DNA of 64,000 nucleotides from contig NC_043021.1 of the NCBI RefSeq assembly GCF_006345805.1, forward strand, positions 2,604,001-2,668,000, in the 5' to 3' direction. Positions 32,401 to 35,400 of the stretch are shown piece by piece. Numbering within the stretch: the first letter of the stretch is position 1; the number at the start of each line of letters is the position of its first letter. A model generated the notes under the pieces. The model did not search any database. It was given only the letters and a program-made list of their open reading frames with translations, and was not told the DNA's origin. The stretch is from Octopus sinensis. Lineage: Eukaryota. A program made the position numbers and the translations under genes.

Positions 32401-35400
32401 TGGTTGTGGTGGTGGTGGTGATGATGATGATGATGGTGATGGTGGTGGTGGTGGTGATGATGATGATGATGATAATGATGATGAAAATGATGATGATGAT
32501 GGTGGTGGTGGTTGTGGTGGTGGTGGTGATGATGATGATGATGATGATGATGATGATGATGGTGATGGTGGTGGTGATGATGATGATGGTGGTGGTGATG
32601 GTGGTGGTGGTGGTGATGATGATGATGACGACGACGACGACGACGACGACGACGACGACACCGATGATATATGGAATAATCCGTACCAGCTTTGTGTGCC
32701 AACGTCAGAATGGAATCCACTTTGTTCTTTTCGTATTCACTGTCGTTGCCACATTTTCCAAACGGATAAGGGGCAGCCATTCCCGACATCCCGAAATTGG
32801 TTTTAACGCCCCCTAAATAGGCAGTTGCAGTTGAAGCGGAATCAGCAACTTGACGGTCTGCCGAATGGGTCTGCAAAAAAAAAAAAGGGTCAAAGGTCAG
32901 CCGACAATTGGATGTTCAAATATTTGCATAGTTTCGTATCTGTTCATTTAATACAATAGCAAGTTCAAATATTTGCATAGTTTCGTATCTGTTCATTTAA
33001 TACAATAGCAAGTTCAAATATTTGCATAGTTTCGTATCTGTTCATTTAATACAATTTCAAGTTCAAATATTTGCATAGTTTCGTATCTGTTCATTGAATA
33101 CAATTGCAAGTTCAAATATTTGCATAGTTTCGTATCTGGTCATTTAATACAATTGCAAGTTCAAATATTTGCATAGTTTCGTATCTGTTCATTTAATACA
33201 ATTGCAAGTTCAAATATTTGCATAGTTTCGTATCTGTTCATTTAATTACAATTGCAAGTTCAATATTTGCAATAGTTCGTATCTGGTCATTTAATACAAT
33301 TGCAAGTTCAAATATTTGCATAGTTTCGTATCTGTTCATTTAATACAATTGCAAGTTCAAATATTTGCATAGTTTCGTATCTGGTCATTTAATACAATTG
33401 CAAGTTCAAATATTTGCATAGTTTTGTATCTGTTCATTTAATACAATTGCAAGTTCAAATATTTGCATAGTTTCGTATCTGGTCATTTAATACAATTGCA
33501 AGTTCAAATATTTGCATAGTTTCGTATCTGGTCATTTAATACAATTGCAAGTTCACATATTTGCATAGTTTCGTATCTGGTCATTTAATACAATAGCAAG
33601 TTCAAATATTTGCATAGTTTCGTATCTGGTCATTTAATACAAATTAGACAAACGCCAGTCTTTCAAATAATATACGACATAAATTCTTGATTAATCAAAA
33701 ATATCAGCCCTGCAGAGGATGCGTTTTCAGTATCAAACAGCAATTAAGACCAGTTCCACATAGGAAGGGGAATCAACAATTAGAGGCAGATGTGGCTGTG
33801 TAGCAACAAGCTGGCTTCTCAACCGAATGATTCCGGGTTCAGTCCCACTGTGTGGCACCTTGGGCGAGTGTTTTCTATAATAGCCTTAAGCCGACGAAAA
33901 CCTTGTGAGTGGATTTGGTAGACAGAAATAAAAAGAAGCCCGTATATACCAGAAAATACTTATTACTATTGTAATAAATAAATTTGAAAGTAAAACGGAA
34001 ATAAAAAAGAAATTATTGACAACTCTAACCTTGCTTAAGGCTGTGTATGGGAATTTTTCAAAAGCCAAAGGGATTTCATATTTTCCTTTCAACTGGCCCT
34101 TGAGGATTCGAGCAGCTGCTATCGTTGGCAACCCCATGCCGTCGCCGATAAATAAAATGATGTTCTTGGCTCTTTGTTTTACAGGGACTCGATTCAGAAT
34201 ATCGTTCAGTGTTTCTTCCGCGTGTTTTTCCCATTCTGCCGCTGAAATAAATAATATAAAGATATTCATTGTAAAAGAGTGAGCTTATATATTCGAGTAA
34301 ATACCAATGTGTTGTAGTTTTCTTTTTGTAGGGACAGTCCCGATACTTTTTGATCAGAACTCGTATGTATGTACACACACACACAACACACACACACACA
34401 CACACAGTTCATATTTACAGAAAACAAGAAACGAAGATGAGTGAAGGAACAGAAAAAAAAACAGGCATATTAGTTTAACGCTAAGGAAGACTGGAAAAGT
34501 CTTTGACGTTTCGAGCTTACGCTCTTCGTCAGAAAGGATGGAGAAGGGAAAAAAACGGAGAGAGAAAAAATATGTAGGGATTAATGGTTCGACATGATAA
34601 AATGGCAGGATGAAAGAAGTTGAGAGAAAGGGAGATAATAACGGTGATCCAGACGAACATACATACATACATATTAACACATCAAGGCAATCAATACGAA
34701 TTCCAAAGCATAGTTTAAAGCAGACAACGAAATAAATACTCTTACTCTCTCTTTTACTCTCTTTTACTTGTTTCAGTCATTTTGACTGCGGCCAAGCTGG
34801 AGCACCGCCTTTTTAATCGAGCAACTCGACCCCGGGACTTATTCTTTTGTAAGCCCAGTACTTATTCTATCGATCTCTTTTGCCGAACCGCTAAGTGACG
34901 GGGACGTAAACACACCAGCATCGGTTGTCAAGCGATGCTGAGGGGACAAACACTGACACACAAACACACACATGCATATATATATATACACATATATACG
35001 ACGGGCTTCTTTTAGTTTCTGTCTACCAAATCCACTCACAAGGCATTGGTCGGCCCGGGGCTATAGCAGAAGACACTTGCCCAAGATGCCACGCAGTGGG
35101 ACTGAACCCGGAACCATGTGGTTGGCTAGCAAGCTACTTAGCACACAGCCACTCCCGCGCCTAACTTTATTTGGAAATATGAAAAAAGGCTTCAGTACAT
35201 CGATTGATATTTCTTGGAAAGTTATTTGACATCCTAAAACCTATCGAAATAGCAATATACATTGTCAACCCCGCACTACTGAACTATACTGAAGTATACG
35301 AAATGTTTTCCTCAAAACTAAAGATTCAGAAATACACCCTTGTTACCGACACCCTAAAGTACTCTGGACCCTTACTAATTACGAACAGATGGCAAAATAT

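Follow-up and report, generated by a model that had tools for sequence, protein, structure and literature searches.

A minimal hammerhead ribozyme motif within a mollusc alkaline phosphatase gene, probably intronic and probably a relic of a Penelope-like element

The 64,000-nt stretch of contig NC_043021.1 analysed here (the window) carries an alkaline phosphatase gene on its minus strand and, on the coding strand of that gene, a 36-nt motif with the sequence of a minimal type I hammerhead ribozyme. The motif probably falls within the first intron of this molluscan gene, and quite likely represents the hammerhead of a short, old fragment of the Penelope-like element (PLE) lineage that was inserted in sense orientation beside a microsatellite. 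The features of the immediate locus are:

34501-34536, minus strand: minimal type I hammerhead motif (exact string, descriptor match)
34400-34597, minus strand: interspersed repeat unit carrying the hammerhead, about 200 nt (blastn, nhmmer)
34373-34406: (AC/GT)n microsatellite closing the 34400-34597 unit on its 3' side (repeat analysis)
34030-34241, minus strand: alkaline phosphatase exon, the 'exon 2' of a preliminary description of this DNA (PF00245, E 1e-14; acceptor ttatttcag/CG, donor AAG/gttaga)
53374-53473, minus strand: putative coding exon 1 of signal-peptide type (relaxed heuristic scan; phase-1 donor CGC/GTGAGT)

Of four minus-strand open reading frame (ORF) pieces that resemble alkaline phosphatase exons, three match the Pfam family PF00245, spanning the N- to the C-terminal end. 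The preliminary description had placed the motif on the sense strand of this gene, about 260 nt upstream of exon 2, and both statements hold: the exon begins at nt 34241, downstream of the motif, and the measured distance is 259 nt. When the peptide from spliced exons 2 and 3 was searched against protein sequences, the closest alkaline phosphatase was from Biomphalaria (56% identical) and the top relatives were molluscan; no close or cephalopod alkaline phosphatase was retrieved. The start of the coding region is less clear-cut. A strict scan for exon 1 returned nothing and a relaxed scan gave one good candidate, 53473-53374(-), for which the junction peptide with exon 2 resembles the N-termini of other alkaline phosphatases. 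If this exon is real, intron 1 would extend over 53373-34242, would be about 19 kb long and rich in repeats, and would contain the motif in sense orientation. An alternative start at an in-frame ATG (nt 34269) would give an 11-residue signal-like peptide and would put the motif upstream of the coding region; it was judged less likely because it is located in the polypyrimidine tract of a good splice acceptor. Two long low-complexity tracts (31830-32880 and 23670-24445) lie within introns of the gene. Of these, one consists of a triplet-type repeat, read as poly-His, poly-Ser/Pro or poly-Asp/Gly according to frame, and the other is a tandem array reading CVCVHVCL.... A 49-nt tandem repeat (2.9 copies) is found at 33500-33642.

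A string search recovered the motif with 0 mismatches on the minus strand (34536-34501) as CUUU-CUGACGA-A-GAGC(GUAA)GCUC-GAAAC-GUC/AAAG, the slash marking the predicted cleavage site. The core residues, GNRA loop and GUC triplet that had been reported from inspection of the sequence are thus all confirmed. Every invariant hammerhead position is present (C3, U4, G5, A6, C7, G8, A9, G12, A13, A14, A15.1, U16.1 and C17), and the predicted scissile bond, between C17 (base 34505) and N1.1 (base 34504), is the one proposed previously. Helix I is open and consists of 4 bp (CUUU/AAAG). Helix II also has 4 bp (GAGC/GCUC), is closed by the G10.1-C11.1 pair, and is capped by the GUAA loop; the closing pair is kept as G-C in four of five aligned family sequences and is G-U in the fifth. 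Helix III is the self-complementary palindrome ACGU (A15.1, C15.2, G16.2, U16.1) with a 0-nt loop. An extra unpaired A (nt 34525) between A9 and G10.1 occurs in all five aligned sequences. The preliminary description had likened this residue to the extra A of a natural viroid hammerhead; that parallel exists (as cited in PMC4209133), but the extra base is no oddity, being a published hallmark of the PLE class (PMC4209133). The assignment to the PLE kind of minimal type I hammerhead with a short palindromic stem III was sound, as the traits, apart from the length of helix II, match those described in PMC4209133.

The likelihood of a chance occurrence was assessed with a custom minimal-hammerhead descriptor, modelled on the published descriptor for this class. 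The motif at 34536-34501 was the sole match in the window, even when the descriptor accepted as little as 2 bp in helix I and 3 bp in helix II, and no second copy of the 36-nt sequence was found in the 64 kb with up to 3 mismatches allowed. First-order Markov sequence with the dinucleotide content of the window gave one match per 62 Mb, and a hand estimate from base frequencies gave about 1e-4 chance matches per window. Overall, about 1e-4 to 1e-3 matches per 64-kb window are thus expected by chance, so that the motif is unlikely to be chance within this one window. The same rate corresponds to tens of matches per 2.5-Gb genome, and for genomes of a few Gb the chance argument alone cannot decide the matter. 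The derivation of the motif from a repeat follows instead from the existence of homologous copies. Rfam hammerhead models (Hammerhead_1, _3, _II, HH9 and HH10) gave no match at the gathering score across the whole window, and no hammerhead family was returned at E<=10 around this motif (34400-34640) or around a second, inverted pair of motifs at 37.3-37.65 kb. The sub-threshold Rfam matches were only hairpin or microRNA-like, and arose from the latter inverted repeat. A covariance model (R1) placed the motif as its top match with 58.5 bits, a score that is by construction, R1 having been built partly from the motif itself.

Searches by blastn, nhmmer and the covariance model detected a total of three family members in the window, alignable over about 200 nt. 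The two others are:

7715-7923, plus strand: degenerate paralogue, GUUU CCGACGA A GAGC UCC GCUU GAAAC GUU AAAC (R1, 52.6 bits)
12338-12540, minus strand: degenerate paralogue, CCGACAA A GAGC UAU GCUC GAAAC AUU AAAA (R1, 52.2 bits)

The unit carrying the motif and the 7715-7923 copy share about 65% identity overall, with about 61% in the flanks against about 84% at hammerhead positions outside the loop, and the hammerhead is the best-conserved portion of the repeat units. A (TG)n microsatellite terminates both of these units, and microsatellites precede both paralogues. The paralogues hold 12-13 of 14 core positions, and retain the bulged A, the helix II stem, GAAA, A15.1, U16.1 and H17, with loop 2 varying in sequence and length. 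In both, U4 is replaced by C. The 12338-12540 copy also shows G8 to A and G16.2 to A changes, which are of the CpG-decay type, and in the 7715-7923 copy the outermost helix I pair is swapped from C-G to G-C, a compensatory change. Both C4 copies also have U17 and a 3-nt loop 2, features that mark a single subfamily, and the C4 change in the two paralogues accordingly counts as one event. Neither Tandem Repeats Finder nor the covariance-model search revealed a tandem array of hammerhead units in the window. The motif also has no partner there: no tandem copy, no inverted mate, and no nearby copy with a matching helix III palindrome. The nearest family members lie 22 and 27 kb away, both with mutated cores; the closest on the same strand, 22 kb off, probably falls beyond the gene, and its helix III strand reads ACAU.

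Supporting evidence also came from an unrelated contig and from elsewhere in the window. Metagenome contigs were scanned with a pattern that demanded only AAGAGC...GCTYGAAACRTYAAA and made no demand for CUGACG. Six loci were returned, of which L001 (Ga0126337_10000459) alone is convincing as a hammerhead; the other five are partial matches forced by the pattern. L001 reads CUGACGA A GAGC UAAC GCUC GAAAC GUC AAA, and equals the window motif at all 27 non-loop positions, U4 included. Nt 4436-4514 of this contig carry two minimal hammerheads on opposite strands with their 5' ends abutting (head-to-head), within an inverted repeat whose arms are about 55 nt long, which is the layout reported for PLE insertions (PMC8557442, PMC4209133). 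A scan of viral contigs gave only three identical chance matches, located within a coding region and lacking helix II complementarity. Within the window, a covariance-model lead and comparison of the arms identified a similar arrangement:

37303-37654: head-to-head inverted pair, arms 92.6% identical over 258 nt
37376-37341 (minus strand) and 37580-37615 (plus strand): hammerhead-like motifs of the inverted pair, each arm reading UGU CUGAUGA A CG GCAA CG A GAAAC UCAGA GUA/ACA

This pair is 2.8 kb from the motif, in the same putative intron, and its left arm adjoins a (TA)n tract. The arms have a bulged A, a GCAA (GNRA) loop, a GUA triplet and a palindromic helix III with a loop 3 (ACUC-A-GAGU). 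Their helix II is of 2 bp only and is without G10.1-C11.1, and for this reason they are regarded as degenerate or variant hammerhead copies. The pair looks like a PLE-style inverted insertion. Taken together, L001 and the 37.3-kb pair indicate that the genome carries PLE-style hammerhead elements and that the motif at 34501-34536 is one of them.

The preliminary description called the hammerhead 'intact' and proposed that it could cleave the host intron co-transcriptionally. The first of these is true of the sequence only, since the ACGU helix III has no loop and cannot be closed by a monomer. Within one RNA molecule helices I and II can be formed and helix III cannot. For the bare motif, the fold with helices I and II and a free core is predicted at -5.8 kcal/mol, against -12.0 kcal/mol for the minimum free energy (MFE) hairpin, a gap of 6.2 kcal/mol. 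With 30-nt flanks the corresponding values are -7.3 and -16.3 kcal/mol, and the advantage of the inactive hairpin comes to 9-10 kcal/mol when flanks of 30 or 100 nt are included. This hairpin pairs U4-G8 with C15.2-A1.1. An intermolecular ACGU/ACGU helix III would contribute -1.7 to -3.1 kcal/mol, and a double hammerhead would reach about -15 kcal/mol, compared with about -24 kcal/mol for two hairpins and -26.2 kcal/mol for an extended duplex; the double-hammerhead value is a hand sum of tool values, used because the pseudoknotted topology cannot be scored directly. The sense-strand copy of the 37.3-kb pair, 2.8 kb upstream of the motif, has a palindrome that differs from ACGU. Loop-loop contacts, which allow fast cleavage at cellular Mg2+, are absent as helix I is open and only 4 bp long. 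In published experiments, single PLE minimal hammerheads showed no detectable cleavage and dimers or trimers were weakly active (PMC4209133), and the same picture, no activity for single copies and weak activity for dimers, is given in a review (PMC6765202) and in PMC7229834. Co-transcriptional cleavage of the host intron by the motif, as predicted from the sequence, is unsupported: the copy is solo, the hairpin is ahead by 6-10 kcal/mol, helix III is weak, there is no Rfam match, and single copies are inactive in the literature.

Other repeats in the window include remnants of the long interspersed nuclear element (LINE) type at 49823-52281(+) and 59682-62070(+), with Pfam RVT_1 and zf-RVT domains, and a zf-CCHC ORF at 57608-58126. 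The remnant at 49823-52281 runs antisense within the putative intron 1. Searching proteins with the LINE reverse transcriptase gave relatives of <=70% identity only, and the contig holding the best of them (L007) contains none of the short interspersed nuclear elements (SINEs) of the window and no member of the hammerhead family. The most abundant of these SINEs is of the transfer RNA (tRNA) type, measures about 420 nt with an internal microsatellite, and occupies 12 sites in the window. Examples are:

34745-35165, minus strand: tRNA-type SINE
25290-25694, plus strand: tRNA-type SINE
28384-28759, plus strand: tRNA-type SINE
39113-39563, plus strand: tRNA-type SINE

Six of the 12 copies match only the head of about 170 nt, suggesting subfamilies with different bodies, and one head (7420-7583, plus strand) immediately precedes a hammerhead unit and shares its orientation. 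This SINE presumably resembles the common octopus SINE. The idea that the hammerhead unit forms the 3' part of the SINE was rejected, there being 12 SINEs and three units, and the unit with the motif following a complete SINE. A further interspersed repeat occurs three times (6067-6505, 11661-11966 and 16862-17233, all plus strand) with near-identical ORFs (...SVVGAFYVP...); no Pfam match was obtained for the one copy tested.

The explanation that best accommodates the motif, its repeat family and the neighbouring inverted pair is that of a PLE-derived relic. The fragment would be either the 3' end or pseudo-long terminal repeat (pseudo-LTR) piece of a 5'-truncated PLE, or a non-autonomous PLE derivative, inserted in sense orientation beside the microsatellite in the probable intron 1 of the alkaline phosphatase gene. 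In the model given in the literature for active elements, minimal hammerheads would process tandem transcripts, with two copies pairing through the palindromic helix III, and in the resulting double hammerhead each copy would cut after H17. As the motif is solo, a single transcript cannot give rise to a double hammerhead; the RNA of a solo copy is predicted to rest in the inactive hairpin. Its present function in the host is most likely none, and it may be seen as a tolerated intronic repeat in which the consensus core letters have been retained.

Several observations weigh against PLE ancestry. No PLE reverse transcriptase or GIY-YIG ORF occurs in the window, and the reverse transcriptases that do occur are, by their RVT_1 and zf-RVT domains, of the LINE type. 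The assignment to PLEs is consequently based on motif architecture and insertion style; most genomic copies of such hammerheads are solo (PMC4209133), however, and a missing PLE ORF does not exclude PLE ancestry. Helix II has 4 bp, whereas 6-8 bp is described as usual in minimal hammerheads of PLEs. C4 is present in two of the three window copies, and CCG to CTG is the favoured direction of CpG decay, so that U4 of the motif could be secondary. In the five-sequence alignment there is only one compensatory pair, which is no better than shuffled alignments, and the competing hairpin fits the alignment as well as the hammerhead pairing does.

The last of these points lead to the possibility that the family was never a hammerhead: the repeat may encode a hairpin (UGACG..GAGC-loop-GCUC..CGUCA) with the consensus CCGACGA, and CUGA would have been gained by a CpG to TpG change, a near-coincidence. 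CCGAC in both paralogues, the fact that CCG to CTG is the commonest type of mutation in methylated genomes, a hairpin conserved as well as the hammerhead pairing, and the lack of recognition by Rfam are all in keeping with this. It is nevertheless improbable, as the paralogues still hold nearly all core positions along with the bulged A, G10.1-C11.1 (one as G-U) and H17, the C4 copies represent one subfamily (3-nt loop 2, U17) and hence a single change, and the unrelated contig L001 has the same hammerhead with U4. The combination of traits also fits the published profile of PLE minimal hammerheads (PMC4209133). More plausible, though still unlikely, is a different vehicle for the same hammerhead, namely a monomer of a non-LTR retrozyme or a SINE-like non-autonomous element mobilised by PLEs, rather than a truncated PLE end. 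Both paralogues seem to begin at much the same place, directly past the microsatellites, as if the unit of about 230-260 nt were a defined one and not the product of random 5' truncation; a tRNA-type SINE head precedes one paralogue in the same orientation; and according to a 2026 preprint animal retrozymes stem from PLE pseudo-LTRs. However, there are no tandem copies, the hammerheads of retrozymes are canonical type I ribozymes that possess loop contacts and a real helix III (PMC7229834), both of which the motif lacks, and with 12 SINE copies to three hammerhead units the adjacency is probably chance. The choice between a retrozyme or SINE-like vehicle and a PLE end leaves the class of the motif unchanged.

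A role in the host may also be considered, in which a domesticated or incidentally active intronic ribozyme, as a monomer assisted by host factors or by pairing in trans with transcripts from other copies, lowers or tunes alkaline phosphatase expression. The fully intact core and the four CpGs kept despite the age of the repeat family would be compatible with such a role, as would the sense orientation at 259 nt upstream of a 3' splice site. Amniotes have conserved intronic hammerheads (as cited in PMC7229834), and a boost of minimal-hammerhead activity by host factors in vivo has been suggested by the authors of PMC4209133. Against this stand the solo state of the copy, the loop-less helix III with its small energy between molecules, the 6-10 kcal/mol advantage of the inactive hairpin and the lack of loop-loop tertiary contacts. 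No Rfam hammerhead model matches, HH9 and HH10 included, and single minimal hammerheads were inactive in the published work (PMC4209133). Vertebrate retrozymes are reported to be depleted from introns (2026 preprint), which would be expected if active intronic copies were harmful. Host activity of this kind is thus very improbable, and its specific form, in which a co-opted solo motif cleaves the alkaline phosphatase pre-mRNA with the help of chaperones or of trans pairing with related repeat transcripts and so throttles expression, is extremely so. Were it real, that form would parallel, in an invertebrate, the intronic hammerheads of amniotes.

What is new here is one more copy, as the class itself is already known and very abundant. 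A single extra copy in a mollusc (probably cephalopod) gene, of a class with thousands of members per animal genome, matters little in itself. It does illustrate that a hammerhead core of perfect sequence, when found in an intron, is usually the debris of a retroelement. Rfam hammerhead models miss the class entirely, and annotation pipelines will therefore not flag such sites; the association with microsatellites and inverted copies offers a simple aid for recognising these units. Were cleavage in vivo true, it would bear on whether minimal PLE hammerheads act in cells and on whether hosts tolerate or use them.

In newt satellite 2 and avocado sunblotch viroid, whose hammerheads are double (Forster et al. 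1988, as cited in PMC4209133 and PMC6765202), helix III is, as in the motif, too weak within one molecule, and activity is expected only with two copies sharing an extended helix III. Those RNAs are tandem multimers in which a partner is always present, whereas the motif is single and would have a 4-bp intermolecular helix III. The plus-strand hammerhead of Chrysanthemum chlorotic mottle viroid (De la Pena and Flores 2001, as cited in PMC4209133) also has an extra nucleotide between A9 and G10.1, but it is of type III with stable helices and loop-loop contacts, and the extra A of the motif is a trait of the PLE class. The conserved intronic hammerheads of amniotes (HH9/HH10 type, as cited in PMC7229834) similarly lie on the sense strand of a host intron; they are canonical, efficient, ultraconserved and modelled in Rfam, while the motif has neither an Rfam match nor tertiary contacts. 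Metazoan non-LTR retrozymes (PMC7229834; preprint 10.64898/2026.07.22.740005) share with the window unit a short AT-rich sequence, a type I hammerhead and a tie to PLE pseudo-LTRs, but form tandem arrays of 170-400-nt units with canonical hammerheads, in contrast to the minimal hammerhead of the window unit and its lack of an array.

The closest parallel is with the minimal hammerheads in the flanking repeats of PLEs, which number thousands per metazoan genome and are mostly solo (Cervera and de la Pena 2014, PMC4209133); a coral genome alone has several thousand minimal motifs (PMC6765202, PMC7229834). PLEs carry hammerheads near their 3' ends, show inverted and 5'-truncated copies, and have an insertion bias towards microsatellites (Craig et al., PMC8557442). 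The Schistosoma mansoni families have a helix I of 4-5 bp, a helix II of 6-8 bp and an unpaired base after A9, and the class in general shows a conserved G10.1-C11.1 pair and palindromic 15.2/16.2 positions, through which a helix III can be shared between two copies (PMC4209133). The motif differs from these metazoan examples in its shorter, 4-bp helix II with a GNRA loop, in the lack of a PLE coding region or second flanking repeat nearby, and in the mutation of U4 in two of the three window members. Like them (PMC4209133; Lunse, Weinberg and Breaker 2017, as cited in PMC6765202), it is of type I with an open 4-bp helix I, and has complete CUGANGA and GAAA boxes, a nucleotide left unpaired between A9 and 10.1, the G10.1-C11.1 pair and a palindromic (ACGU) helix III, and it occurs as a solo copy within a diverged repeat family with a microsatellite alongside.

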